Below, one piece after another: positions 11,672 to 30,493 of a stretch of DNA of 64,000 nucleotides. The first letter of the stretch is position 1, and each line of letters starts with the position of its first letter. The position numbers and the translations under genes are program-made. The notes below the pieces were generated by a model, which was not told the origin of the DNA, made no database searches, and was given only the letters and a program-made list of their open reading frames with translations. Location of the stretch: contig ADNK01002633.1 of assembly GCA_000320545.1 (NCBI GenBank), positions 22,609 through 86,608 of the forward strand, in the 5' to 3' direction. This DNA is from Bigelowiella natans CCMP2755 (lineage: Eukaryota > Protista > Cercozoa).

Positions 11672-13129
11672 ATGTCACACCTGAAGGAGTCGCTTCTTCG
11701 TTCCTCTTTCGAGGCTTCCAAGCCGGTTTGTTTGTCGTTGCTGCATCACTCGTCGCAAATAAACATCAAAACACCACCAATAGATAACAACCCTCTACGT
11801 CATTTCACAATACAACTCTCTGTGACTTCAATATAGTTAAATCCTAGCATTCCTAATGTTTTTCCATCTTTTAAAACTTGGTTCTCCCCCCCCCCCCTCT
11901 GTAGAGGAAGACGTCGTATAAACAGCCTGAATGGGACACGACCCAAGTTGATTATGTGAGGAGCCTCACATGTCCTCACGAAGGCCTCAAGTATCACAAT
12001 AAACATTTATGCCACTACTGCCTGGCTATCCACGCAGCGAATGAAAACGCCCCGGGACTATCGGTAGAGCCGCTCCCCACTTTACTTTCGAGAAAACAGC
12101 GATCCTGTTTGGAGATCTTTGCGCTCAGTTTTTATCTGTTTTTGTTATTGCTTGCATCGATTCACGTGTAGATTCTTGTATATGTCAACTGTGCTTTTAG
12201 TTTAATATCTTACATTTTGAATTTTATTAACTGCTCAGATGAAGTTCGGGTCCAGAGAATACAAAGTATGCATTTGTTAGTGTGGAGGGATTCTCGCTGT
12301 GCGCCTCAATAGCGTCTTTTTTTTGTTTTTTAATTCATATACATCGGAAATGTAAACGCTGATACGATATTTCTTGCTATTTTTTAACTTTCCTTTTTCG
12401 GGTATTCGGTATACAGGGGCGTCTCAAGTTTCCTCGAAAGGCAGAGGTGATGTTTTAATGAGAAAGAATTGCGTTAGCATGCAAAGGAGGGGTTGGTTAG
12501 AGAACAAACTTCAATATATATCAACTTGAAGGTGTACTCATTGACTCATACCTATCGGTGGTTTTTGATGAACTCCTTAGGTTCCATTGCAAAGTCGCTT
12601 GAACAAGAGCTTCATGATGCGTCGCCTCCAAAAGAATAAAATGTAACTAACAATCGATCTCCAAATTATTAAGAAAATACAACGTCTAAACATGATATAT
12701 TGCAAGCGAATATGCGACGTTGTTGTTGTTGTTGTTGCGATTGCGTATTGTTGAGTTGCTCGACACTGTCATTATCATCATCATCATCATCATCAGCATC
12801 ATCGTCCTCATCATCAGCATTGCCATCATTGCACTTCATAGGGAGACAAAAGCACTAGCAGAACAATACCGGCAAAGAGCGATAAACTACAAAGACTCGG
12901 TAGATAGTAACAGCATCATCAACAATTGTCCACTGCGAGATATATATTGGGAGAAGCTATAGGGAGAGAGAATTTAATCTAATAACGTTTTGGTGAAAGG
13001 CGAATAATGACTACCCTGAAGTCGGAAGGCAAGTTGAAGTCAATATGAATGCAGAAGGGGTAACAAGATGACAATAGTATTATTATTTAGGTAGAAGGAT
13101 GTTCTGCTTCCGTCACACGCACTAATAAT

Positions 13130-13164
<35 letters not shown>

Positions 13165-13177
13165 AACACACAGACAG

Positions 13178-13222
<45 letters not shown>

Positions 13223-13430
13223 ACAAACAGACGCTTTTGCCACTGATATATGCTTGGGGCAGCATCACTGACATATCATCAAATGCTGATCGCAGTCACA
13301 GAGAGTCTGGGTACCCGCCACAATCAACACGTGCACGCAGGTGGCCTTTTTGTCGTTCAAGCAGATAAATAAAATTGAGAAAGAAAGATTTCTACTGTTT
13401 TCTTCTCACTGCCTGCCGGCAAATATATAT

Positions 13431-13491
<61 letters not shown>

Positions 13492-15689
13492 TATATATAA
13501 ACGTTCTTCCTGTATATTTGGCATCTTCCCACCTGCTTCATTAAAACCTTGTATGCATCTGATTTAATACAACTATATTGCTTCATGGATGGTCTTGCAA
13601 CACTCGCCGACAGCTCCGGGGAACCACGCAATACTGGTAGTAGTTCTTAAGGGAGAGACGTATTAGTGGTAGTAGTTAGTGGTAGTAGGTGGTGGTAGTA
13701 GTGCCAGTAGCCGCAATATCTGACGTCATTTTTCTGTCACTGGATTGTGATCTAAAGTATGGCATTTTTTGAGAAAACGATAAGAGAGGGATGAGTAGTG
13801 CGCTTGCCTTAGTGAGTGTCGCGTGCAGTCGGTAAAGTGCTATGTGTCTGACACGCTGCTGGCACGCCGAAACCGCATATGGTCAAATACAGGCTCAGAG
13901 TCGACTACGAAGACGGGAGCGAAGAAACCCTCCCATGGCCAAATGCAGATGTACGGAGTTATTCCTTTGACATAATGTTATAAATACCATCACTATTGAG
14001 TCAACTATCAAATCAACCGTCTTGAGTTTTTTATCATTCAATTCTATTTATGAAGGTGAAGCTTGTACCTCGTGGAATGGAGCACACGCTATTTAACAAA
14101 GCCTCGTTTGCCCTGCGACTTCCGAAATTGCCAGACACGTACTATTGATTGATGGCGTTTGCTTTTGTCGCTCGTGTATTCAGAAGAAATAAACTCAAAT
14201 GCATACATCGTGCGCCTTCATTATTGCTAGGACTACATTGCATACCTACACATGAAACGATGAAGGCACTGATGTTGCTTATTCCGACAATTACCACAAC
14301 TTAAATACGAAATCAGGCCTAGGACTGCTGCTGCAAAAGGGGATGCGATGACAATGGACGACGTACTTTATACATCTGATAATGAACTATTTACGCACAA
14401 CGACACATTGCCATCAATGACCACTCGTATTTTTGTAAATAAACATATGATATCTGACAGAGAATATGCGCTGTTATATATTTAATCTTATCACTTTTTG
14501 GTTCTTGTACTCATCCCTACCTTCCTATCTAACACCCCTCTCTACACGCGTCGACATGGCAATTTTAAGGAGGCAATTAATTGGCCGAAGCCTATTAGAT
14601 CCCCGCCTCCTAGAAGGCCAAAGCGATCAGACTCGCCAGGTTTTTGCTTTATTTGATACACTGCAATGAGACGAGAAACAATTAACCCCTCTATGCAACA
14701 ACGGTGAAAACACAGCGTGTGGTAATATGGTGTAATAATCTGTATCACAACACGGTGTAAAAACTAGTGATGATCGAAACCGAGAAGCGCCCATCAGCAA
14801 CCCCAACGTCAAGAACTGTTAAAACGTCAAAGGCAAGAACGGTAAAATCCAAATACAATCCTTCCTCCCGCAACTTTCTCCATAGCCCTCTCTCAGTTAC
14901 GTCGCGTGTGTTTGCTCACGCGTACTCATCACTAATGTACGATGACAGCCCACGTCCCCCAAATCGCCCAAGTCGCCTTCGAGTAAACGGAAAGCTAGAA
15001 AGAAGAAGCAAGAAAAGGTGTTTGAATATGGGCTTTCTTCATTTTATCTTTCAATCCTACGTGCAAGCTATGCAGCGTACTCGCCGCCGGCCCCTACCTC
15101 GTCATTAGACAATTTATATTGACCTGATTACTGCAATATCAATTGTACTGTTATTTGCTATGAAATCGGAAACGGCGGGGTCTGGTGATTAGAAGGAAAA
15201 ATCTCCGGCTGAAACACCACCAGCCAAGAAGAAGACCTACGCAACGCCTTGGAAACAGGAGAAGAGTCAGTTATTCTATCGATCGATTTTAGTCTTAGGA
15301 AAAAGACGTTTGCCGTTTTTTTCCGCGTTGGGCCGTTGTATTTATGCTGAATGATGTATTTTATTTCTCTCGCTTACTCCTTGCTTCTTCCATATTTAAT
15401 CAGAGAAGAAAAAGAAAAAGCCGCCCCCGCCGCCTCCAGACCGAGATGACGATCATAGCGTTGTTTCCGATGTAATACGACGCTATAAACTCGGGTTGAT
15501 ATACATGCACGCCTTATCCACACTACTCTATACTTTACGCAGTTTGAAATCGAAGATGACTTCGGCGAGGAGTTGGGTACAAAGGGGACAAAAAAGGTCG
15601 GTTGCTCATCATCCGCATGGTGTGCCCCTGCCAACTCCACTTACGATTCATATCGTAGAGGAGGAAGTGCGTTATTTCTCACTCTCTAT

Positions 15690-15730
<41 letters not shown>

Positions 15731-18700
15731 TCATTCTCTCGATATATAACTCATTTTGTGTGTGTGTGTATGTGTGTGTGTGTGTGTGTGTGTGGGTAGA
15801 GTGTGAGTGTTCGGTACTTTAACTTTAACCTGCATTCTTCCAACTTGCCGCTCGCCTCCTCTCTCCTCCCATCCACCTTTCCTTTATTTAGGTTGTTCGT
15901 GTGAATATGGTGAGGTTTAAGCGAGGGATCAAGGAAGATGTCCGAAGAGAGGTCGTGTTGGAATTTGAGAGTAGTGTCACGATGTTATGAGAGGCTAAGC
16001 CGATTCTATATCACCGCAGTCAGTCACCGTTTGGATATTTGCGACGTCCATCGGCGATTTTAAACGCCATTTTATTTCACTGCTGCTTATAATGATAGAA
16101 GACGGTGACAGTGCTGACGGTGTTTAATGTTTGAATAAAAACAGCTTAATACGGAGACTCAGGAACTAGAAAAGGCCAAGGAAGCCTTCGAGGCTGAGCG
16201 GTTTTCCAAACTCTCCGAAATAGAAGCGTTAGAGAAACAAACAAAGGAGGTCGGCTCTATAATACACACAAGTGAACAATTTGCTACATGGGTTGCACGC
16301 GAGATCCTCTGTATGATGTATGCACGGAGCAAAAAGGAAGTGAAAACTGATTGAATACCAATTAAACAAGGGCTTTGGCAAAAAGCTGAGCGCACGCAGT
16401 TTCAGCGCCGTTTTACTCACCAAAACGATGCGCTGACCATCTTTGAAATTATCTTCTGAATAGCGGCAAGTTGAAGTCGATACCATTATAAGACAACGGA
16501 AAGTGGAATTGAAAAAACGCAACAGGGCCAGGTGCTATTGTAGAACCCTCTTTATGCCTTATTCGTTGTATTCATCATCTTTTCTTCACCAACTCTTTGT
16601 GCTTTATCTGCATATAGTCTGCTTCTCCAAGAGCAAGAGCGATTGATTATCACTAAGGATGATGTTGAAAACGATGGTGAAAACAACAAGGTTAAACCGC
16701 GAGCCTGCGTGCGAGTGTGCATGCCAGTGCGCGCGCGCGTGTGTGTCGTTGTTTTCTTATTTTCCAACGAACAACTACCGCCACTACAACAACGAGAATA
16801 ACCGGACAATTGATGATTTTAACCTTTATTGGATGGCTCCTACTTGCAATGCTATTTTGCATATCGTTGCCTAATAACCGTTCGTCACACAACCAGGAGG
16901 AGGCAGCGGAGGAAGATAATCAGGTGTCATATACCACATCTTCTTGGAAAAAAATGAAAAAACAATAACAATAACAAGTTGACTTATATGTCGCGGGAAT
17001 ATTTTTAAGTGTATTTAGCACATAGAAAACACGACGGTGTTGATGTTTGCGATGATATACTTCTGAATAAGGAATAAATGCTGTTATATGTGTATATTAT
17101 ATATATATATATATATATATTATTTATGTGTACGTGTGTGAGTTTGGGTGCTTACAAAAAATCGGGTAACTTAGGCGGGAGAAGAAGATGATGACGACGT
17201 CACAGATATAGATATTGGAATGGCTGGCAAGGGAGGCAAGCCCATAGCTTTCGGACCGAATACACTAGAAGTCGATCTAAAAAAGCTCACAAAGTAAGTC
17301 AAGTTCTAATGCACACATGCATACCTCCATTTATTAAAACCCAACTTGCAACCATCAAGGGGTGCGAACAAGGAAGAGAAAGATCTGATGTTGAAGCTGC
17401 ACAGAGAGGCCGAAGAAGAGTAAGGACTCCTATATGTATCCCGAAGTACCAAACGACATTCTTTATAATTTTTGACTATCTGCATGATCTCCACTCTTAT
17501 GGCGTGATATGACGTCTGTTACTGCGAATCCCACCCTCTCATCTACCCGCTGACTTACTATGCTCCCCCCCCCCCCCCCCCCCCTCCCCTCTAGGCTTTC
17601 AAATATACAAACTGGGGCCGAGGAGCGAATGTTGAAGATTAAGGAAGAAACAACCCTTCAACTTAAGCACGCAAGAAAATTGGCAATTAGAAAGGGAAAA
17701 GACGCAGACCAAATCACGGAGGCCCTGCGAGTGCAATATCGGAAGGCAGAAGCAAAAATGCGGGCCTTAAAAGACGACCGTGCGCGCGCCAAGGCTGATA
17801 TCCAGGAACGCATCGCAGCTCTGGAGGAGAAGCGGAAAAAGCAGCAAGATTTTCTTCGAGAAAGACAGAAGACCCTTCTGGACAAGGCGGCAAAGGCGCG
17901 AGGGGAAACGTCGAAGATCATCGAGATCGAGCAGGAAAAACAGCGTACCATCGAGGCGCGGGAGAGGAAGAAAATCCGCGAGATTAGCCGCCGTGCAAGA
18001 AACTTGATAAAAGAAAAACGCGAGGAAGAGGAAGTGGACAAAGGCCGAGAGAAGCTCAAATCCGAATTCCTTGAATTAGAGAAAAAACGCATTTACTCCT
18101 TGGCGCTCTCTGCTAGAGAGGAGGGCCCAGCGTGGGACGACGCTGCGGTGTTGTGTCATCCTGATAAAAGCATTTTCCTCCAGTCCGCCTGGGGGCGAGA
18201 TTTCCGGGAATTTTACTCCAACTCGAAAGGATCGGATGCCTCGTTTGAGTTTTGGCTATCCGTCGAGTCGATTCGCGACTGGTGGTTTGGCAAGGGGAAG
18301 GGCGCACCTGAGAAGCACATTCGCCTTGCAATGGCGATTAAAGACATCTGGGCGAACTATTTCTCACCAAACCGTAAGAAAAACAAGGAAGGTAGTAGAA
18401 TCACGGTCACCACCACCCCAGACATCGTAGAAGATTTAAAGGACACCGCTCCCGACTACACCGTGGAGTTCTTTGCCGATGCGCAAGTGTACGCGTTCGA
18501 GAAGCAGATAATGGAAAGTTTCACTCGCTTCTATAACGTCGCCACGCGAAAAACGGTGCAGTCAAAGGACAAAGCAACAGCGGAAAGAGAGCTTGAATTA
18601 ACAGAGCAGGAACTAGAAAGCACGTCGCTACAAGAGGACTTCGACGGCGGCTTTGTAGACCAGAAACACGAGGAAACTGATGGTGGTAAGACTGGAAAGG

Positions 18701-21700
18701 AGGAGGAAAAGGACTTTGATGAGCAGAAAGAGTTCGTCAAAATTGCGCATTTAAAGGCGCTATTAGTGAAGGCGGAGTCCGTTGCCTCTTCAATCGACCC
18801 AGTACTGAAGTACCATAAAATGCACAAGATCCTTATATCAAAGCGCGAGAAGCTCCGTCGGTTGGAGCAGGAGATGAAAACTCGCGCTGCTCGTGAATCC
18901 GAGTTCGTCGGGATTCTTACGCTGTGCAAGTCTCCAACGGCTTTCGACTTCATGTGCCTCGCAAGAGTAGGGCAAGAAGAATTTGAAAATTTCCTCTTCC
19001 TCGAAAACCGCCTTCCTATCCTATCGATACTGCGACACGTGTCTGCCCGCCTGGCGAGACTGTCATATGATAGTGCCAAGGACGTGCAAACCGACGATTT
19101 CGAAGAAGGGGAGAATAAGAGAATCGACGCCATTTCAATGCGGTGGACGCCTAAGCTTCTCCAGATCGCGGAGCATGGAATCGGCGAGGCTCTGAACCCG
19201 TACGCTCTAACACGACTGACATTCGAACAAAGGGAGGCCGGCGTTGAAGAGAAAAAGGTCACCGACTTCAACCTCGAGGATCTACGCATCTTGGCGTCTA
19301 ACGTACACCAGACCGTGAGAGAGCATTTGTGGCCAAAATACCTTGCGTCCCCGTCGTGCACATTTTTCCAGCAGAACGGCTACTCAGAGCCGTACTTCCC
19401 GCCAAGGCTGACGAACGTGCAGTTTTGGAGGTCGTTGCGCATCTTTATCCGGGAAAGAATGCCTAGACTTATGCCGACGCTGGATCTATGGAATTGCGTG
19501 CAAAACCTCGTTATGCAAAGCCACTTGTCGCAGGCGGAGGGCTCAAACGGGTCTCTGCTGGGCAAAGAGGACGAGATGTACATCCCCGAAGTGCATTTGA
19601 ACACGCTGCTTAAATTCAATCGTTTGCCCCGGAGCGAGACCATCGTTGCGGCTGTGCGGGCGTGCGTCGAGAAGGGCCACATCGAGCGAGCGAGTGGTTG
19701 GCTGCGCCGGCTCGAGAGTGCGGAAGGCGTTGCGGAGCATGCAACTGTCGCTTTGAGGAATGAAGTAATGCGGGCCTACGCCGAGCCAGGCCACGTCTGG
19801 AGATGTGAGAGGGCGCTGAGAGACATGGAAGAGCAAGACCTAACGCCTGACCAGCATACGTTCAACGCCGTATTGAAAGCGTATGTCACTGCAGCGGAGA
19901 GGGAGTTTGAGAGCCAACAGAGCCTACGAATCTACGGCTTGAAAGAGCCGAGGCCCGCACCCGACGCGGAGACCTTTATGTGGGTAATCAAAGCGTGTGT
20001 TGGAGAGAAAGACCCTTTGTCAGCTGAGAGATGGCTTGAGATCATGGAAGATTCTACCGGGCTCACGATCACCGAAGAACATTATTCTATTGTTATTAGT
20101 GCTTGGGCAGAGACAGGAATCATTGAGGCAGCTGAGCGGGTTCTTAACCACTGCAAGCGAAGCTTTGAGAAGAAGGACGTGCCTCTTGCTGTGGGGGCGT
20201 TCTTGCCCGTGTATCTCTTGCAGCCGAAGAGAGAAAAGGCGAGAGAGATAATAGACGCTATGCTCACCGAGCTCTCTCAAATCTGCAAAGACCTCGAGAC
20301 GACCGACTTCAAGCTCGAGAACTACCCTGAAATGCAGGATTCCAAAACGGTAGTGTGTTCGTTCACGCGGCCGGAGCTACATGCGAAAACCGGCGAATGC
20401 ATGCGGTCCTTCATCGCTGCGATTCGGGGTAAATATGCGCCTACCAAAGAAGACCTTAAAGACCCCTTCTTCATTTCGAAACGCCAAATACAGCGCAACA
20501 AGGAAAGGGCAGGAGCTGGACACGGCGACGATGCGCGTAACCCAGACGACAGCCCCTCTTCCGGATATGATTTTGAAAAAGAGGAACTCAAAGCACGGGC
20601 GCGACGCAATACCGTGAGAGAGATAGAGCGGCTGCTGAGCGAGGTGGAGAAGAAACCTGTCCTTCGCCACTCAAATGCGGGGTTCGGGTGGTTGCACCGG
20701 TTTGAGGAGGTAGTGCCATTGAGATTTTCCGTAGAGAAGAAGACATTTTTGCCAATTTAGTTTTTTTTCGAAATGCTATCGTTATCCATCATGTCTTTGG
20801 TTGTAAGGAGGCCGAGCCAGTCTATTTGTTCTTTTTTATCGCTAAGCCACGCGTTGGGCTACGGGGGTGTCCAAATTAGGATTAGGCTCTTCTGAATATG
20901 AGATTGATGATGATATATCCCCATTCTTAGGAGGAAATGCTACCGACCGAAAAGGCTGTGCACGACCTACTCAAAGCTGCGAGCCCTCGTGGCGACTTCG
21001 AAACAGTACAGAAGTTATTAGAATTAAGCATGAGTGACAAGCATGATATCAAGGTTGTGGGGAGGAAAGAGGACTTGATGCATCTATGCGGAGCGTATGT
21101 CCAAACATCTTTCAGCCACGCTAAGACGATTAAGGACGATCTAAGCCGTGCAAGCATTGAGCTAGCACCGAGTGAAATCGAAGAAGCAATTTTTCACGCA
21201 GAAACGCAAAACCAAGGTCCGTTCCGTACATATCCATGCGTATTGTATAAATTCTATGCGGGCGGTAGGAACGCCATAAAAGGAAGATTGAACTTAGAGT
21301 AGTAAGAATAGGGAATAGTAGGTACTTGAAATGCAGCTATCAAGAGTGGTTCTATATCATCATTTTGTTCGCAGATTCATCGTTAGAAGGGTGCTTACTA
21401 AATTCCTTTCTGTTTGGTGTGTTTTTCCATCTATCTTTTCAAAGCCGAAGCTGCGGTAGGGTTGCTAGGACTAATGTTTCACTCCAAATACACCTTGAAG
21501 ATGGAACACTTCGATTCAGCATCTAATGCATTTGGCGGATTTGAAGCCGTTCGCGGGTTCATCGACGGGTGCGACAAGGCGTTTTGGCTGACTAAGGAAG
21601 CCGAGTTTAAAAAGCACCGAGAGATCACAACTAACTGGATCGATGAGATACAGTTCCTTCTTGAGTCTTGCCCCTTGCAGGAGGAAGATGGTTATGAGTA

Positions 21701-24698
21701 CTGCCCAATGACACTCGGCGCGCGCAAGTGCAACCAGCGTGATAAGGTCAAGAATGGCGTCTGCTTGGAGTGCGGGTTGGCCTCAATCGAGTTCGGTCAT
21801 TCCGTCGCCCTGGCTGACTCTGAAGGCAATACCGAAGTTGATAAGAAATTTCTACAAGATGTCTCTCAAGCAGCATCAGGCAGCACAGGCGTAGCAGCGG
21901 GAAATAGAAACGAGGCCGAAGGAGACGAAGATGAAGACAACGATGACGAGGGGAAGATGGGGATAGTCGGGATTAAAGTACCGGAAGGACGGCGCGCTGC
22001 CATACTCCTCAACTTACACAAAAATGATAAGCCGAAGCAGCCAGTGCCTCCAGAGGCTCTAGGAATGGCCTACCTCACAGCGATTTCCTGCTCGCCGAGT
22101 TCAACGTCTGCCTTTAGCTTTTTGGGAGAGGCGCAGGGCCTTGGCCTTGATCTCGGCATCCAAGGATACGTTGCTGCCCTCACTGCGTGCGAGAGCAATA
22201 AGGAGCGCGACGAGACCGTGAAACTTCTCCGCAGGATCCAAAAGGCGAACCTGGAGCTCAACGCCGACATGTTTGTTTCTGTGTTCAAGACGTTCGGCGG
22301 CATCGGCCACGCTGAGGAGTGCATTCGTTTGCTGCAGTTTGCCCGCATCAATATGAACGAGTTTACGGTCAATGGCATCATCGAAGCCTACGGCAGATTG
22401 GGGGGACAACTCAAGATTACACAGTTTGTCAGGCACCTGAAGCAAACGATGCCTAATTACCACGCGACAAGAGATAACTATTACTACGCTCTCAAAGCGC
22501 AGATGAAGACAGAGCAAAAAACACTGCTAAAGCGCGCCGCGTCGAGTATAGACGCACAACCTCTTCCCGTCGATGAAGACAACGAAGAGGTTGACGAGAA
22601 AGAACAGTTTTTTGTAGAAATTAAGGAATCCGCAGTGGAGTCTTCTCGTTCCCTGTTTCAAGCGGCTGAGCAAATCGATTGGATTATTGGCCAAAGGCAG
22701 CTAGAAAAGAGTCGTTTCTTCCTTGCAGCCGAAGCAGTAGAGCGCTTGGCAAGCGGAAGAAAACCAACGGGTGAGGAAACTAAAGAACTCACGGAGCTGC
22801 TGAAGCCAAAACCGTCTTTCAATGCGAAGGCAGAAAAAGGCGCACTCTTATCTGGAAGGGACTTGGACCCGTTCTTAGCCAAGAAGGTTGATGGAATCCT
22901 CGGCCTAGCCGATGGAAAACACTCAGAGAAGAACAACGATTCGGCAACAGGAGGAACCCAAAATGAGCAGGTTACGGGCGGTGCTGAGAAGGCTGTTGTC
23001 TTTGCCGACGACGATTTGTCTGATGAAGAAGACGAGGGAAATCCCATCGAGATTTTAGAAATGATGCAGGAGACGGAAGTGCCCGTTGATCACGGCATCT
23101 TCGAGGTTGTCGTGGACGCCTACGGCGGCTTTGACAACTGCTTCGAGATCTTCAAAGATATGAAGGAGGCAAAGGTCTTCACGCATGCGCCCATGTTTGA
23201 GGTCATCATCGATCACTTTGCCGGGAATGGCGACATCAAGACCGCTAGAACTTGGATGAAGCGGATGTTGCTATCGGGCCACGACCCGCACAGAGAGACC
23301 TTTTTCGGCCTGGTGGACGAAGCCGCAATAAACGTAAAACACGATCTCAGTGAGAAGTTCATGCGCTCTATAGCGTACTCGAAAATCTCCCTGGACGAGG
23401 AGTCCCTCACCAAAACCATCCAGGATATGCTGGCTAGCGGGCCGGCAGGCCTGGGGCAAGCGGAGCACTTCCTGAAGGGGATGGAGGACACGAAGCTTCC
23501 TGTCAAGATCTACGACATAATCATCGAGGCGCATACAAAGGCGGAGAAAGGCCATTACGCTCAAGACTGGCTCGACGTGAAATTCCAGATGAAATACGAG
23601 CCGTCAAGGGAGCAATGGCGCGCGGTGGTGTACGGCTGCTTTGTAGCGAGGATCAAGGGCAAACGAACACTCCGGGCTTTGGATAGGATGCGAGCACAGC
23701 AGGTCACGCCAGATATGCAGTATTTCAATAAAGCGTGCGAGCGGCTGGTGTCGCAAGGTGACTTGCGAAAGGCCGAGATGTGGCTTCAAGAACTTATCGG
23801 GCTACAACAAGAGCCGCATAGCGATTGGTACAATGCTATTGTCAGAGGCCATTGTGACGCGAGGAATCCTGAGGAGGCCCTCGTCTGGATGTTCAAGATG
23901 GAGAAGCTCAGCTTAACACCTTATAAGAGGCGCTGGCGTGATTTGTTCTCATCCTGCAAGATCATTATGGACACGAAGATTGCTGCGCGAGTCTTGCGCA
24001 TTGCTCATGAGCGGAAATTCGACCCTGACCCTGGCTTCGTCCCAGTAGAGCTAATACAGGAGGCTAAGTACGATGATGCCATTACCTGGCTAGATGGCAT
24101 GAAGGCAGAGGGGTTCCCTCAGGGCGCCGATGTATATCGAAACATGTTCAGATCGCTACGAGACATCGAGTTTTGCAAGAAGCTGTACAAGAAGTTTATG
24201 GCGGAGGGCCTCAAGCCCAGTTCAAAGCTTCTCTACGCCGTGTTAGAGTCGTCAGGAGGACACCGTCGGATAGACACGTATTTCAGTGTTATCAGCCCTT
24301 TTCGCCACGAGTATACCCCCGAGGCGTGGGTAGGTTTGTTTAAAGAATGCAAACACTCTGGAGATGCCAAATCCGCCGTTGACTTCATGGCTAAGGCGCG
24401 GGAAATGAATGTGTCGCTTTCAAGGTCCTCTTACGTCGATGGGCTGGCTGCTTGTGCCAAGGCAGGCGAGTCAAACTTCGCACAGAAAATCGCCAAAGAA
24501 GCTGAGACGCTGGAAAACATCTGTCTGGACACTGAGATGTGCAATCTTCTGGTACGTGCGCATGCGAAGTGTGCGAACAAGGCTTCCAATGAGTCAGAGT
24601 CGCCTGCAGCGAGAGCGTCGAGATTGCTGGAGCGCTTGTTGGACTTATGGTCACCACCCAACAGCGTCTCCGTAAACGGTACTTCACATATATACATG

Positions 24699-24735
<37 letters not shown>

Positions 24736-27700
24736 AATACATATATATTTACATATGGATTTGAAGCTTATGAATCTGTTAAGCTTGTTATGATCGTTGT
24801 CGTTCACTCGTCGGTACAAACGTTGTTTTTTCTTGTTGCTGCTTCTGATGCGAAGACTTGACCATTTTTATCGCATATTGTTGCGCAGGTGCGGAGGCGT
24901 GTGTATTACGGATGCAGAACGCGAGCGTTCCTCCCGACCGAACAAGCTTCGGGTATATGCTCCGAATCTACTCGTGTGCGGGGGAAGCTAAAAAGGCTGG
25001 AATCGTCGCCGAGCTGATGCACAAGGAAAATGGTGCTCAGAAGGAGGACTTCAATGAACTCGTCCGTGCGTGCGCGAGAGCTGGGGACTCTAAAGCAGCC
25101 TTTGCTCTCGTCGAGACGATGAAGGGGCGAAGTATCACCCCCAATGCAGAAACCTACCACTACCTCCTGGAAGCAATGGGGGCCGACTTGGACGCCGAGA
25201 TCTCAGGGGATGACATCGTTGCGGTGATGAGGAAGGGGGAGGAAAGCGACGGTTGCGGGGAAGAAGTTCATCTGGGGGCTATGCGTGGGCTGGCCATGCG
25301 AGCGGAGGCAAAAACAGCTGCTAGGATGTTTGAAATACTGCTAGACATGGCCATGCCGAGGGTTAAAGTAACGGAAAACATCGAAATAGGCCTCGCCGCG
25401 ATGCGTGCGGCTGCCCTAAACGCCAGTGTAAAGAACGCCGAGCACATCATGCATCTGATGCGCGACGAGGGCATAATAGACCTGCAAGACTTGGATGTGG
25501 GGTGCTCAGAAAAGATCCGGCATCTTCGCGCCGTTGGCCTGGCGGTCTTCTTCGAGGCGTGTGCCCGTGCTAGGAACAAGGAGGCAGCGATGCAGCTCCT
25601 TAGAGCTCTTGAGAAGAAGAATGGAAGCTTGGATTATAAGCTTTCGCCGATGCATTTCGACTATATCGCTCGGGCATGTTCGGCGTGTGGGGACTACGAG
25701 AATTCTCATAAGTATGCGGAGATGGCCGCTGAGTCTGTACGAAAAGGTACATGAATTTTTGAATTGGAAGCCTCATTTATGTTAGCAATGGTTTCTTTGA
25801 TGGGTGGCAGTGCCATATATCTCGACTTTCTAAAATTAAATTACTGATTGTTTCTTGTGGCGTCTCATCTTTCCCGTAGGGTCATACGACATATTAAAGC
25901 AGCGTGAAGCTAGAAACTTATCCTCGGCGGGTAGTAAAATCTCAAAGTCCGACCGGGCGATAGTGACGGCCAATAAAACCTTCGAGCTCTGTCAACTGCG
26001 CGACGCATACACGCATTTGTACACGCGGAAACGGTGCGGGCTAACAAAGGCCGAAGCAAAAGACTTCGAGCGGCTAGTTACGAATGGAAATAAATCTGGC
26101 TCATTTAGTTCTGACCTTCAAAAAATAGAAGGTAATAGTGACTCACGTTTCGGTCTGTGCATAAACGAACAAGCGATATAAATGTAAAAGTTTCAGCGGT
26201 GGTTGCGGTGGAACTGTAGGCGCTTTGCAGCTCTAGAAACCTATCATATATCACTCCCCATTATTCTCATATACATTGCAATGCCTACTTCGTTTTCCCA
26301 TCCATCTCTGTTAACTCATATGAAAAAAATGCTAAATCTGTCGCCCTTCCTCCTCCCCCGCCTTTCACCACTCATGACTTAGGCTTGATACTCGATCGAC
26401 GCATTTCGCCAGTGATTTGTGCTTTTCGAATGATGAGAGAGTTCTTGCTTTGTGAGGCAGAGCTGGTACTGACGCTGGAGAGCCATCCAAAAGGTTGTGA
26501 TTTCGTTTGTGTCTCCTCGATGTCATCTGATCTCACGTCACGCAATTCTTGGCAGAGGGAGAGGGAGGGAAAGGGCATATACAGCCTCGGTTCATTACTA
26601 TTTATTTAAACAAAATATCATAAACAATGCAGGCTTGCGATTATTCGTGAATACGTATCTTGGCATGGATCATCTGGGGCAGTATCTTAAGGCCCATAAG
26701 CTCGGCGACTTAATCGAGGTAAAGATAACAAAGGAAACATGAGAAACATCACAAGTCCCACAGATGTGGACCTTACGTTACAACAAAAGAGCTTTGGATG
26801 AAGTTTCTGTCTTTGTTTGACGGGGAAACATAGCATAGTCTACACCGCCAAATCAACGAGATTTGTTCTTGGTATATTTTTGCGTAACAGGTATTGAAAC
26901 CTTCATTCCTCTATAAGCTTCCGCTAGAGCCTCCCCCTGACCCTAATCCAGACTACAGCTGGATCGATGAAGGCTATAGAGGAGAAGAAAAAATCAGCCC
27001 CGATCTCAAGAAGAAAGTAACGAGCATGAAAGTCGCGATTTCCTTTTCCAAATCCTCAAATCTGTTGTTCGTTCTTCCAGGTAGCTACGGCAATCAACGC
27101 CTTGATAGCGTCGTCATCGAAGCGAGAGGTATGCCCACATCATAGCAAGGGCATTATTTTGGGAGTCCGAAAACAAATATCTCCCTTCCCGTTGACCTCA
27201 CCTCGCGCGCCGCTGGTTAATTGGCTATATGCGTTGTTTCTGATCCGATCACTTTGCCATTGATTCGCTGTCTGGCCAGGTGCGAAATCGCGTGTGCGAG
27301 TGGGCAGAGGAGCACGTGTGGGATGACTTTTGGAGAAGCGCCTACGCGGAGAAACTCCGGAAGAGGTATGAGGGAAACACTAAACGCACTGAGAGCTCGC
27401 CAGAGAAACCAACAGGGATGTGTAGATGAAGAGTGGTACGAAGCTGGGCGAGACGAATACTTCGCGATGTTGTAGATTAGTTTTGGAACTTGCGTGCTGA
27501 CCTTTCCTTTCAACCAACCTCTGCTGCCGTCGTTGTTTCTACCAGCTGCAGCGGTGGGGATCGAGAGAGTCTGGAGGCAAAGACGAAGGAGGAGCTCAAA
27601 ATGTACGGCACGCCGAAATTTGCCCTTATTTGATTTATTAGTGTGGTGTTGGTATGATCCTTATCGTTTCTTTCTGTTGGAACTGTGATGCTCGTTGTAG

Positions 27701-27984
27701 GTATGATTTAAGGCGTCTAGAGAACGCTAGAAAAGCCCGTCAAAGTATTATTGGTGCGTACAATTGTAAGCTGCTTTTGTTGAATGCAAGGACGCACGCG
27801 GTTGTCAGCATAGAGCCTCATCTTTTCATGGGTTTCCATCTTATCTTCGCTAAAATTTGCCTCTATTTATTTCATCTGCTCAGACGGCAGGAAAGACAAA
27901 ATAAATGCGAAGATCAAGATAATAGAGGTGATCATAGAATAAGCAAGCGCCCAACCAAGAATGCTTGGCAAATCTCTCTCCTTC

Positions 27985-28031
<47 letters not shown>

Positions 28032-28056
28032 CTTTCTCTCTCTCATGTGTGTGTCA

Positions 28057-28098
<42 letters not shown>

Positions 28099-28302
28099 TA
28101 GTATGAAGTATATTCATTTTGAAATTAATCTATTCATTTCAGGATCGGATCGAAGAAGAACGAGAAAAGAAGCGAAAGGAGGTAATTCTTGCTGTCAAAT
28201 TTGTTTCTATTTTTAAAAGTCGCTCCCCTCCAACCACCTGTTAATAAGTGGGGGCGATTCGACTCGATGCGTGCAATATACCAATCGAGGTGCGCATGTG
28301 TT

Positions 28303-28338
<36 letters not shown>

Positions 28339-28714
28339 GTCAGGAGGAAGAACGGAAGAGGAAAATCCAAGCTGAGATTGAAGAGAAAAAACGAAAAGAG
28401 CGAATCCGAAAGCAAAAGTAAATTCAAGATAGAAATAGTACAGGGCTTTCAATCTTAAGCAGGGTCTAGGGCATGAGGTTCTGAGCAAGTTATTCAAATA
28501 CATTCTGTAGTAATTTCACCTGCGTACTAGTGCCAACGTCAAATGTGCAAAATTAATGATTATACCACTGCGCCACAAATAGGGAGGAAGCTCGTAAAAA
28601 GGCAGAAGCCGAGGCCAAAGAGGAGGCGAGGCTCCTTGAAATAGCAATGGAGGAGAAAAAACGACAGGACTTTTTGAAGAAGATCGAAACGTATTAGTCA
28701 ATCGATATTATAGT

Positions 28715-28747
<33 letters not shown>

Positions 28748-28748
28748 C

Positions 28749-28791
<43 letters not shown>

Positions 28792-28969
28792 TGTGAGCGA
28801 GTGTTCAATCTGTGTCAATTGCTAGCGCGCTGAATATATGCGGATAGTGCTTAAAGCATTTGCTCTTTGTCACCAACAAATCTCTCTTTATATCTTCAGG
28901 GAAAAGGCGGAGGTGCAGAGAATAAAAGATCAAATCGAGTTTGAAAAAGAGCAATTCGCACACGTAAGG

Positions 28970-29010
<41 letters not shown>

Positions 29011-30493
29011 TATAGCAGTTTTGCAGCAATTGTATATGCTGGTTGCTACTTATTTTGCAACGGTTTTATTCTGTATTCGAAGCTAATTTTATTTAATTTC
29101 TGCTCGCACCCTTCTCAATCACTTCAACTCTATGATGGCACAGGTGCGAGCTGCCGCCGAGCTACAAGTAGAAGAGGTACTATCGTTGTGCAATGCTAGC
29201 ATGGTCTAAAAAGTGAAAGCGGCGGGGGGGGATTAATTAGACATATTCCAGTAGCAAAAAAGTAAAGGAGAAGCGTTTAAATGGTGCGACATTTGCTGTT
29301 TTTGCATTTTCTGTTTTTGACGATGATATCATCGTTTTTCCACTAAAGTTTAAGGACTTTGGACCCGTGGCACCTCTTTCCGAAGAGGATCAGCAAAGAA
29401 ATGATAAAAGGTGGTTAAATCATCCATATTCCTCCTCCTACCCCGCCTCCCCTTTGCGGAGCCGTAAATAGTGATAGATGTTGTAGTCAAGAAATGACTC
29501 GATGAACATTCGGTGTAGGTTTTTGCTGGATTTCGTTCTCGAATGCAAAGACAATTCTGAGTACTGCCCGATCACGCTGGGAGCTCCTGTTTGTCGCGAC
29601 AAGGTGCTGTGGCGAAAGCTAACGGGGAGGCTTTACATATACAGCAAGAGATGTTTGTTTGTAAAAGAGCTAGCTCTAGATGGGAAAACAGCCTTGCGAG
29701 TGCAAACGATCCTGCGCGCTGCGTCTGGCATTATTCTCTGTAGCATTGAGTTGTCCCCTTTTGCTCAGGTTGTTGGCGGTATTTGCATGGGCTGTTTGAC
29801 GAAAGTCTTCGGCGGAAAGACTCTCTCACAGGTATTTCCATATTATTATTACGATGCATGTTAATGCACACGAAGGGGTTATTCTGGATTTTGAAAATTA
29901 GCCCCTGTGTTCATCTTATGTTTGTGTGTGTACATGCTCGCCATCTTCATCTTGAATACGCACGCATTATTTGACCCGGTCTTTTCCGCCCAGAAAATCA
30001 TGGAAGAACAAGAAGAAAAGGCAGCTGAGCGCCGGAAGGCGGCAGCAAGATACGCCAAGTTGCACGAGCACTTGCACCATCTGGAAGAGAGAAATTTTGT
30101 TTGCAAAGGTACGTAAGCAGCAGGGAGGGGTCGTGGTACTGTCTTTTTTTTCAACCCCGGGGGGGGGGGGGGGGGGGGCTTTGGGCATACAACTTGATTC
30201 TCTGGTTTTTTTTACAATTATCTTGAAAGAAGCTGTTGACATGACAACTGACTGTCGCGATAGGAAACGTACTGCTGAGAAGGTGGTTCACCAACGCTTT
30301 CATCAGCGCCGTTAAAGAAGCAAATGCGAAAGAGGAAAAGGAAAAGGAAGAAGGCGAAAAGGAAGAAAAGGAAGAAGGCGAAAGGCAAGAAAGCGACGAG
30401 AAGGGCGGGGATCGGAAGGAAGATGGCGAGGGCGAAAAAAAGGAAGAAAAAGAGGTTGCTCGTGATGATGCGCCTGAAGAAATCAAAGCATGA
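11672..30493 (+). CDS. Giant multidomain protein (~3,500 aa by exon sum): Tudor-like, K/P-rich, coiled-coil, RGS domain(s), pentatricopeptide-repeat arrays, two copies of a Cys4 motif, C-terminal coiled-coil
   Basis: Long exons 17595-20709, 20931-21216, 21445-24678, 24889-25746 and 25880-26131 join in phase through GT-AG introns. About 25 small 5' exons from ATG 11672 (MSHLKESLLRSSFEASKP) and about 18 small 3' exons to TGA 30491-30493 also keep frame. The core 17595-25746 is secure; the 5' and 3' extensions rest on phase continuity and internal repeats. Confidence 0.75.
13000..14071 (+). other. Tudor-like (SH3-fold) domain encoded by five micro-exons of the giant gene
   Basis: Spliced exons 13000-13059, 13302-13340, 13614-13636, 13893-13950 and 14056-14071 read YPEVGRQVEVNMNAEG-RVWVPATINTCTQ-LRGTTQYW-LRVDYEDGSEETLPWPNAD-VKLV. 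This matches the Tudor pattern vG..V.v..W..a.I..V.YeDG..E.l. Confidence 0.65.
18150..18540 (+). other. RGS (regulator of G-protein signalling) domain within the giant gene
   Basis: GRDFREFYSNSKGSDASFEFWLSVE...AIKDIWANYFSP...RITV...FFADAQVYAFEKQIMESFTRFY follows the RGS consensus F..FL..e.s.enl.FW..ve / a..Iy..y / i.i / F..AQ..i..lm..dsf.RF. Confidence 0.75.
19620..25730 (+). repeat. Pentatricopeptide (PPR) repeat arrays, more than 20 partly degenerate 35-aa repeats in several blocks
   Basis: Examples: PDQHTFNAVLKAY, PDAETFMWVIKAC, EEHYSIVISAWAETGIIEAAERVL, PHSDWYNAIVRGHCDARNPEEALVWMFKM, DFNELVRACARAGDSKAAFALVETMKGRSITPNAETYHYLL. The count is an estimate by eye. Confidence 0.9.

Follow-up and report, generated by a model that had tools for sequence, protein, structure and literature searches.

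We confirmed a giant gene in the window, a 64,000-nucleotide stretch of the genome of the marine alga Bigelowiella natans, and its size is close to the estimate in an earlier note on this DNA. Our analysis showed the structure of the gene, its expression, the PPR identity of its repeats, and its conservation with one other lineage. With confidence slightly better than even, we read it as a single-copy nuclear gene whose one ~11-kb mRNA encodes a multidomain scaffold of ~3,550 residues, an extra-organellar RNA–protein organiser with a non-GAP RGS domain. As judged from sequence, the architecture of Tudor-like, RGS-like and PPR modules is new and otherwise found only in the cluster of one environmental homolog, P0001. 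No description of RGS and PPR in one protein was found in the searchable literature, in line with the earlier note, which knew of no described RGS+PPR architecture.

Results

We modelled the gene with an exon-chaining script (dynamic programming with codon log-odds, GT-AG sites and homology) and obtained 48 exons at 11672..30493 on the forward strand, with a coding sequence of 10,659 nt (3,552 aa) that has no internal stops and ends in a stop codon at 30491-30493. Every intron of the model is GT..AG. RNA joints were read over ~16700-22699, and the small exons outside 16691-22699 are predictions. RNA contigs from three studies (runs X1, X5 and X9) showed identical GT..AG joints, and six introns were pinned by RNA (16691-16896, 16924-17174, 17294-17359, 17420-17594, 20710-20930 and 21217-21444), all of them GT..AG and with the reading frame kept across each. 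The contigs from the three studies spanned 17605-20707 without a joint, confirming the claim that the RGS-like stretch at 18150-18540 and the first PPR block at 19600-20350 share one uninterrupted transcribed exon. A start near the ATG at 17560 ('MLPPPPPP') had been considered; this codon falls inside the intron 17420-17594, and the large exon therefore starts at 17595.

The spliced transcript contig of run X1 is 11,060 nt long, with ~1,504 nt at or before 16690 and 4,694 nt beyond 22699. Its length agrees with the 48-exon model and leaves ~400 nt for the UTRs, ~244 nt of them for the 3' UTR. Together, this length, the collinear homolog and the stop-free model bear out the proposed 5' and 3' extension to ~3,500 aa. 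A genome search found no paralog of the gene in B. natans. For the B. natans protein, database searches and structure predictions took one exon at a time. The features of the gene, and what each is based on, are as follows:

11672..30493, + strand: whole gene (exon chaining, length of contig X1, collinearity with P0001)
11672..11725, + strand: predicted start exon, MSHLKESLL... (best start by exon chaining; provisional, without RNA or homolog support)
11905..12063, + strand: exon with the first Cys/His motif, C-x12-C-x2-C-x4-H at nt 11971-12033 (tblastn to P0001 aa 77-139, 46% identity, E=1.7e-8)
13000..14138, + strand: putative Tudor-like barrel in five mini exons, 13000-13059, 13296-13340, 13614-13636, 13893-13957 and ~14056-14138 (each aligned, in order, to P0001 aa 205-295)
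14984..15471, + strand: Lys-rich NLS-like runs (frame translations)
16897..17419, + strand: three small exons, 16897-16923, 17175-17293 and 17360-17419 (spliced contigs X1, X5 and X9; junctions resolved by hand)
17595..20709, + strand: large exon with a coiled coil, the RGS-like domain, a conserved helical region and PPR block 1 (jointless RNA cover; BLASTP to P0001, E=1e-53 and 5e-52)
18150..18540, + strand: probable divergent RGS-homology domain, RGS1 (hhalign, Pfam RGS on P0001, Atlas neighbours)
18916..19411, + strand: conserved helical region (34% identity to P0001)
19600..20350, + strand: PPR block 1 (PPR_2 31.2 bits, cut-off 30, and PPR_3 30.6 bits, cut-off 25, from a scan of 19600-20049)
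20931..21216, + strand: exon (RNA joints 20709 to 20931 and 21216 to 21445 in X1, X5 and X9)
21445..24678, + strand: large exon with the second Cys4 motif (21699-21776), weak PPR (22047-22496) and PPR block 2 (22947-24600) (RNA-confirmed 5' joint, predicted donor at 24679; tblastn to P0001 aa 1912-2448, E=3e-109)
24889..25746, + strand: exon with PPR block 3 (Pfam PPR matches; tblastn to P0001 aa 2443-2699, E=2e-29)
26633..27419, + strand: conserved C-terminal module, exons 26633-26718 and 27280-27419 plus predicted small exons (weak collinear tblastn, P0001 aa 2823-2946)
27552..28963, + strand: predicted Lys/Glu-rich coiled-coil-like exons (exon-chaining model)
29519..29831, + strand: third Cys4 motif, C-x8-C-x8-C-x2-C, interrupted by an in-frame intron at 29604-29768 and restored by splicing (tblastn match at P0001 aa 4235-4303)
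29994..30493, + strand: last two predicted exons, 29994-30108 and 30264-30493, with an acidic tail and the stop (exon-chaining model)

An exhaustive phmmer search of 1.84 billion representatives returned the P0001 cluster (members P0002, P0003 and P0005) as the sole relative. P0001 is an unannotated ORF of an environmental eukaryote on an 82-kb metagenome scaffold, 4,386 aa in length (4,257-4,386 aa, depending on the start called). The window is collinear with it over 11887-30343 (tblastn), the segment 30266-30343 aligning to P0001 aa 4324-4350 near the C terminus. The two proteins have an identical module order, with the N-terminal Cys/His motif first and the C-terminal Cys4 motif last, share 29-37% identity over the large exons and more in the Tudor-like barrel, and both have matches to Pfam PPR families along with a near-threshold RGS match in P0001. 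Unlike the B. natans gene, P0001 is intronless and GC-rich, and it is ~830 aa longer, mainly because of a larger C-terminal coiled-coil repeat region: the modelled protein has windows of at least 50% K/E/R at aa 3221-3301, and the counterpart of its Lys/Glu-rich coiled coil in P0001 is much longer. In the search for further family members, a word-index search with P0001 returned P0001 only and metagenome scans gave no matches; the family is known from two lineages only.

Conservation with P0001 is highest in the Tudor-like segment. The Atlas neighbours of the segment (PTM_DIR17_Tudor 0.89, Spin-Ssty 0.87, Tudor_5/Agenet 0.82) point to the N-terminal Tudor-like domain that had been claimed. Pfam PTM_DIR17_Tudor on the uninterrupted P0001 sequence stayed below its curated cut-off (E=0.014, 15.7 bits vs. 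27.2). A search of the segment against PDB sequences was empty, and a genome scan with PF21743 had no match at the giant gene, where the Tudor-like domain is split into mini exons. We consider the Atlas and Pfam matches weak leads to a Tudor-like identity. The proposed NLS-like Lys runs were recovered within predicted exons, KRKARKKKQEK at 14984-15017 and KKKKKKPPPPPP...DHSVVSD at 15404-15471; of the latter, 15433-15471 aligned to P0001 aa 434-446, adjoining the KKRKRKKR run of P0001. The predicted start exon, itself provisional, has neither a hydrophobic nor a clearly amphipathic leader, consistent with the signal peptide being absent as proposed. A targeting peptide could lie on a missed exon, because the start exon is predicted only.

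The region 18150-18540 is probably an RGS-type domain, as the earlier note had suggested, although the evidence for it was indirect or fell short of a cut-off. Comparing a profile of the window and P0001 with one of six RGS domains of the B. natans genome, hhalign gave E=5.8e-5 and a score of 32.9 over 101 columns, in register across profile columns 16-118 of 125 and with a probability of 62-66%. Among 400 column shuffles none reached this score (mean ~12, maximum ~20), and the reversed profile scored 9.7. As a control, the six-domain profile matched human RGS18, RGS4 and RGS10 (~1e-15 to 2e-13), Axin and GRK2; the RGS profile that matches RGS1 thereby also matches Axin, the GRKs and SNX13/25, and RGS22, a large RGS-bearing structural protein (PDB 9fqr), was among the matches listed for it. 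Pfam RGS matched P0001 aa 831-923 with 22.6 bits (E=1.5e-4, profile positions 25-108 of 117), against a gathering cut-off of 23.9. The two nearest Atlas clusters among the language-model neighbours of RGS1 are RGS (0.89 and 0.88), and the RGS hallmarks G-x2-F-x2-F, S-x-E-F-W and F-x2-A-Q followed by S-F-x-R-F are in register. By contrast, with the limit relaxed to E<=10, Pfam RGS (PF00615) had no match in the window itself, either by hmmscan or in a six-frame genome search, and AlphaFold2 models were unusable, with pLDDT of 37 for a 521-aa piece (single sequence) and 41 for the 154-aa RGS1 (two-sequence alignment). A HMMER profile of the six B. natans RGS domains matched neither the window protein nor P0001, and PDB sequences, searched with RGS1 both as a profile and as a single sequence, returned nothing relevant.

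The strongest alternative, though an unlikely one, is that 18150-18540 is a lineage-specific helical domain resembling RGS by chance or convergence, which would make the protein a Tudor-like and PPR giant. The missing Pfam match in the window and the sub-threshold score of P0001, the blank result of the genome's own RGS profile in HMMER, the limited hhalign probability, the low pLDDT values and Atlas scores below 0.9 would all be consistent with this. However, three independent methods gave RGS over the same residues, the hhalign score was out of reach of the shuffled and reversed profiles, and a chance resemblance does not sit well with hallmark motifs in register.

Granted an RGS-type domain, its catalytic function is doubtful. 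The catalytic Asn of the alpha5-alpha6 loop (Asn128 of RGS4) corresponds to the N of 'KEVNLD' in RGS18; in this column the window has Thr and P0001 has Lys. The alignment is gapped and of low confidence here, which leaves the mapping with moderate confidence. The G-alpha contact positions differ between the window and P0001, and E-S-F-x-R of alpha8 is kept in the window only. As the catalytic Asn is replaced, the domain is probably noncatalytic and would serve in docking rather than as a GAP. Two further RGS candidates picked by eye, the conserved helical region 18916-19411 (E=0.043 against the RGS profile) and the C-terminal module (P0001 aa 2770-2960), were dropped because hhalign gave E=0.04-0.05 and a probability of 1% for both.

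Three blocks exceed the curated Pfam PPR cut-offs (PPR_3 25, PPR_2 30, PPR_long 27 bits). In addition to block 1, the ORF at 21414-24734 with block 2 scored 36 bits for PPR_2, 29.4 for PPR_3 and 28.8 for PPR_long, and 24858-25751 with block 3 scored 50.7 for PPR_3, 41.9 for PPR_long and 40.6 for PPR_2. Pfam scans found no TPR or HAT matches over the blocks, settling in favor of PPR a distinction on which the earlier note depended. By these profile matches, the repeats of the giant protein are degenerate PPR: the strength is 28-50 bits per exon, compared with up to ~60 bits per repeat in canonical B. natans PPR genes. Canonical PPR genes are numerous in the B. natans genome.

Few of the repeats scored individually in window scans. 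A home-made iterated HMM placed 15 motifs, 6 from the window and 9 from P0001, with adjacent 35-aa units in 17595-20709 and 24858-25754, and left most of the ~1,800 aa of PPR-positive sequence unparsed into units. We defined a readable P-class code as one that combines N, T or S at position 5 and D, N or S at position 35. Position 5 was occupied by E, A, V, A, Y and E in the window and by E, M, E, A, Y, A, Q, Q and Y in P0001, while position 35, where aligned, was Q, A, R, A, R, A or K. With a canonical residue at position 5 in 0 of the 15 placed motifs, these show no readable RNA code, a feature for which the earlier note had suggested a test.

PPR proteins are textbook organellar RNA binders and overwhelmingly organellar. 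The giant could thus be an unusually large PPR factor for RNA processing, imported into the mitochondrion or plastid, with its Tudor-like and RGS-like segments as structural spacers without signalling. The many canonical PPR genes of the genome would suit such a factor, the N terminus of the giant is a prediction, and the reading frame upstream in P0001 is Arg/Ala/Ser-rich and presequence-like. Against it are the leaderless predicted start, the Lys-rich NLS-like runs, the long coiled coils and the length of 3,552 aa; the PPR motifs are also far more degenerate than those of the canonical genes, and the best-conserved parts of the protein are its non-PPR modules. We judge this second alternative as doubtful and place it just behind the first. 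Instead, the Lys runs, coiled coils, Tudor-like barrel and leaderless predicted start suggest a cytosolic or nuclear protein.

Ranked third, and rather improbable, is that the PPR blocks lack RNA binding and are alpha-solenoid protein scaffolds in a large structural or cytoskeletal assembly. The absence of canonical code residues, the scarcity of individually scoring repeats, the long coiled coils and the existence of large RGS-bearing structural proteins such as RGS22 are compatible with this role, but non-plant PPR proteins, LRPPRC for example, bind RNA without the plant code, and Pfam gives PPR, not TPR, HAT or ARM. Finally, it is very improbable that transcript assembly and exon chaining fused two or more neighbouring genes into an artefact. 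In favor of this reading, a contig over two genes is no proof of a single transcript, reads were aligned over 16700-22699 only, and the small exons are predicted. Against it, the frame stays open with GT-AG introns only through all 48 exons, the order of segments equals that of one uninterrupted P0001 ORF from aa 77 to aa 4350, and the length of contig X1 fits the model with ~400 nt to spare.

Discussion

We favor the reading of the protein as an extra-organellar scaffold. The predicted modules would run from a Cys/His knuckle through the Tudor-like barrel, Lys-rich NLS-like linkers, a coiled coil and the divergent RGS-homology domain to three degenerate PPR blocks interrupted by a Cys4 knuckle, and on to the C-terminal module, a charged coiled coil and a third Cys4 knuckle. 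Such a protein may act outside organelles and organise RNA–protein assemblies. Its PPR solenoids would hold RNA without a one-base-per-repeat code, as LRPPRC and other non-plant PPR proteins do, the Tudor-like barrel would read a modified partner, and the RGS-homology domain would provide a docking surface without GTPase-activating function, the partner of which may be a G-alpha.

Parts of this arrangement have counterparts in known systems. LRPPRC has a degenerate PPR array without the plant 5/35 code and with few individually detectable repeats; it and other long non-plant PPR proteins resemble the giant in these respects, but LRPPRC is ~1,400 aa long, mainly mitochondrial, and without RGS, Tudor and coiled-coil modules. 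DENND4-type proteins are cytosolic and have PPR motifs beside a DENN Rab-GEF domain, and are a precedent for the fusion of PPR motifs with a GTPase-regulatory domain, although they contain a Rab GEF rather than RGS, few PPR motifs and no Tudor, and belong to the animal lineage. AKAP10 is an RH-domain scaffold protein. Its non-GAP RH domain and those of Axin, GRK2/GRK5 and SNX13/SNX25 are similarly RGS-type helical domains within large multidomain proteins; like RGS1, the non-GAP RH domains of scaffold proteins are without the catalytic Asn and presumably dock, whereas these proteins lack PPR and Tudor modules. Compared with the canonical R4/RZ-type GAPs RGS4, RGS18 and RGS10, the helices align from S-x-E-F-W to the C-terminal S-[FY]-x-R-F, but the Asn of 'EVNLD' is replaced, by Thr in the window and by Lys in P0001, and RGS1 of the window has insertions in two loops and scores below the Pfam cut-off. 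Loss of GAP activity and a role as scaffold have been described for some RGS domains (PMC3971589).

The earlier note had raised the possibility that G-protein signalling is linked to sequence-specific RNA binding. The anatomy behind this idea was upheld, but with the replaced Asn, the nonconserved contacts and the lack of a PPR code the function is not supported as proposed, and the alternative given in the same note, a use of the domains as scaffolds, fits at least as well. RGS domains are textbook switches of heterotrimeric G proteins, and a minimum of 20 G-alpha loci was counted in the B. natans genome, which also has many canonical RGS genes. It is conceivable, though we hold it improbable, that the RGS-homology domain docks on activated G-alpha and thereby recruits or releases the PPR/Tudor scaffold, such that receptor signalling would directly control the bound cytosolic or nuclear RNAs. 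We know of no direct G-protein-to-RNA effector in any eukaryote, and docking of this kind, if true, would be unprecedented. B. natans has been singled out for a lineage-specific expansion of G-alpha (PMC3971589).

For now, the value of the analysis lies in a corrected gene model anchored on transcripts. A protein that combines PPR, RGS and a Tudor-like reader would test whether PPR solenoids act outside organelles, and it would equally test whether RGS-homology domains have been reused as anchors for RNA machinery.

Gene model and transcripts

Three long open frames lie on the + strand (17560–20760, 21414–24737, and 24858–25754) in DNA that is ORF-poor and microsatellite-rich, with a eukaryotic gene structure. 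We aligned four runs to 16700–22699, three of them assembled RNA from one study each, and settled alignment ambiguities at the joints by hand. All three assembled-RNA runs contained GT..AG joints in this region, which are not expected from DNA, and the spliced contigs confirmed six introns:

16691–16896, +, RNA-confirmed intron
16924–17174, +, RNA-confirmed intron
17294–17359, +, RNA-confirmed intron
17420–17594, +, RNA-confirmed intron
20710–20930, +, RNA-confirmed intron
21217–21444, +, RNA-confirmed intron

The upstream exons join the large exon (17595–20709) in frame. RNA covers this exon without any joint, and the RGS-like stretch (18150–18540) and the first PPR block (19600–20350) are therefore co-transcribed and co-translated, as the earlier note had argued in placing them in one uninterrupted exon. 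Intron 17420–17594 contains both the ATG at 17560 and the poly-Pro sequence once taken as a protein start. This ATG heads the longest mechanical ORF, and the intron also has a C-rich tract of ~30 nt that is largely homopolymeric; positions 17555–17598 were skipped as a repeat in read alignment, masking the joint at 17594/17595. The longest contig, from run X1, measures 11,060 nt, with ~1,504 nt at or before 16690 and 4,694 nt beyond 22699, and the mRNA thus reaches far both ways. A 2026 RNA-seq run yielded only eight raw reads, indicating low expression in that run.

Exons were chained by a dynamic-programming script that combined codon log-odds with GT-AG sites and gave a bonus for homology. 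The resulting model starts at the ATG at 11672 and stops at 30493, exactly reproducing the limits claimed previously. The single hand correction was the addition of the in-frame intron 29604–29768, by which a Cys4 motif was restored; this open 165-nt GT..AG intron had been read through by the first exon chaining and by a tblastn HSP, and its retention would add 55 residues inside the motif, the third of the cysteine motifs. In its final form the model comprises 48 exons totaling 10,659 nt, encodes 3,552 aa, and is free of internal stops, and all its introns are GT-AG. Subtracting it from the contig leaves ~157 nt of 5' UTR and ~244 nt of 3' UTR. We regard these results as good evidence for a single gene of ~3,550 aa. 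The small exons outside 16700–22699 are predicted and a few appear over-extended (e.g., 12756–12899); Pfam, profile, Atlas, and PDB queries were made per exon or with the uninterrupted ortholog.

Many introns are filled with dinucleotide microsatellites of three types, (CA/TG)n, (GA/CT)n, and (TA)n (13100–13230, 13400–13500, 15700–15800, 24690–24760, 27960–28110, and 28260–28330), one (TA)n tract beginning directly after the donor at 24679. An antisense ORF of 276 aa (18531–19361, –), entirely within the large coding exon, is most likely a by-product of sense-strand codon composition.

Conservation in a single relative

An exhaustive phmmer search with the residues of 18097–19659 against 1.84 billion representatives gave a single match (E = 2.7e-27), the environmental eukaryote ORF P0001 of 4,386 aa. 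Its cluster has five members, one of which is encoded without introns on a metagenome scaffold of 82 kb; a search of the B. natans genome (91 Mb) found no paralog of the gene. The tblastn matches of P0001 to the window are collinear from 11887 to 30343:

11905–12063, +, exon with Cys/His motif
between 13000 and 14138, +, five mini exons
15433–15471, 15537–15599, and 15892–15954, +, matched segments
three large exons, +
26632–26736, 27280–27408, 29517–29720, and 30266–30343, +, 3' segments

Run X15, labeled as a different organism ("organism B"), contained 38% of the sampled words of 17300–23299; a near-identical gene is therefore present in a close relative or another strain.

The Tudor-like segment is the part most conserved between the window protein and P0001, and its conservation spans four introns, thereby validating those splice sites. 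Family matches for this N-terminal Tudor-like domain proposed earlier were weak, both in Pfam (PTM_DIR17_Tudor, E = 0.014 with the uninterrupted ortholog) and among Atlas neighbors (PTM_DIR17_Tudor, Spin-Ssty, and Tudor_5/Agenet, 0.82–0.89). Both of the quoted Lys runs were found in frame translations. Three cysteine motifs are conserved in the two species:

11971–12033, +, cysteine motif
21699–21776, +, cysteine motif
29519–29603 plus 29769–29831, +, cysteine motif

One is C-x12-C-x2-C-x4-H and two are Cys4, in which YCPxTLGxxxC precedes a C-x2-C pair at a distance of 8 residues in the 3' copy and 10 in the middle copy. The motifs matched no Pfam family and look like small zinc knuckles.

PPR repeats

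Pfam identified PPR families in each long frame: PPR_3 (50.7 bits), PPR_long (41.9), and PPR_2 (40.6) in 24858–25754; PPR_2 (36), PPR_3 (29.4), and PPR_long (28.8) in 21414–24737; and PPR_2 in 17560–20760 (28.8 bits, E = 1.3e-6; 31.2 bits when 19600–20049 was scanned alone). Scans in 150-residue windows placed the signal at 19600–20350, 22947–24600, and 24858–25307, with weak signal at 22047–22496 and 25308–25751. These searches gave no TPR or HAT match, and the repeats are PPR, as first read. Code position 5 was never N, T, or S in the 15 placed motifs and no plant-type RNA code is therefore readable. A main rival explanation accordingly has the PPR repeats serving purely as a protein scaffold. 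Another is an organellar PPR factor whose leader exon was missed; the same genome encodes many canonical PPR genes, with repeat scores much stronger than those of the giant gene, and the giant protein as modeled has no leader.

RGS-like domain

Neither hmmscan nor a six-frame genome scan, which did detect at least 10 canonical RGS domains, gave a Pfam RGS match to the window at E ≤ 10. A HMMER profile of the genome's own RGS domains missed 18150–18540, PDB sequence searches with the stretch were empty, and two AlphaFold2 attempts on the region gave no usable model. These results fit the rival that the stretch is a non-RGS helical domain. Against it, P0001 scored 22.6 bits with Pfam RGS (E = 1.5e-4, profile positions 25–108; cut-off 23.9 bits), over a span coinciding exactly with the part aligned to the window. 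Alignment of the two-sequence profile (window and P0001) with a profile of six RGS domains of the genome scored 32.9 over 101 columns (E = 5.8e-5), compared with a mean of ~12 and a maximum of ~20 in 400 column shuffles and 9.7 for the reversed profile; the six-domain profile is a valid control, as it recovered human RGS18, RGS4, RGS10, Axin, SNX13, and GRK2. The two closest ESM Atlas clusters were both RGS (0.89 and 0.88), the top match sharing 179 of 256 features, where about 9 of 10 true family members score at least 170. By eye, the hallmarks G-x2-F-x2-F, S-x-E-F-W, and F-x2-A-Q then S-F-x-R-F are in register. We judge it quite probable that the RGS domain claimed at 18150–18540 is a true RGS-homology domain.

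The conserved-Asn column (N of RGS18 "KEVNLD," which we take to be RGS4 Asn128) has Thr in the window and Lys in P0001, and the alpha8 contact residues are retained in one ortholog and lost in the other. The RGS-like domain is therefore probably not a GAP. Loss of GAP activity, with a scaffold role instead, is described for some RGS domains (PMC3971589).

Region 18916–19411 looks RGS-like, but neither it nor a C-terminal module conserved with P0001 (26633–26718 plus 27280–27419; L009 10921–11493) passed the profile test that 18150–18540 passed. The C-terminal module ends in V-W-x2-[FY]-x2-S, which recalls the last RGS helix and also closes 18916–19411; the two may represent a repeated module with a fold that the RGS profile does not match.

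Implications

Expansion of G-alpha is described for B. natans in PMC3971589, and the genome has at least 20 G-alpha loci above the Pfam cut-off (e.g., C2424:51138–52136 and C3601:158758–159705). The headline of the earlier note, a link of G-protein signaling to sequence-specific RNA binding, is weakened on both sides by the absent catalytic Asn and the unreadable RNA code, and we regard it as improbable. From the observed gene, transcript, PPR identity, and conservation, we infer the function of the protein as a whole: a giant, leaderless, NLS-bearing, coiled-coil protein in which degenerate PPR solenoids would hold RNA, the Tudor-like barrel would read a modified partner, and the RGS-homology domain would be a docking site, not a catalyst. 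Our literature search found no paper on RGS and PPR in one protein. The domain architecture is real and unusual, made of known parts and seen in two lineages only.
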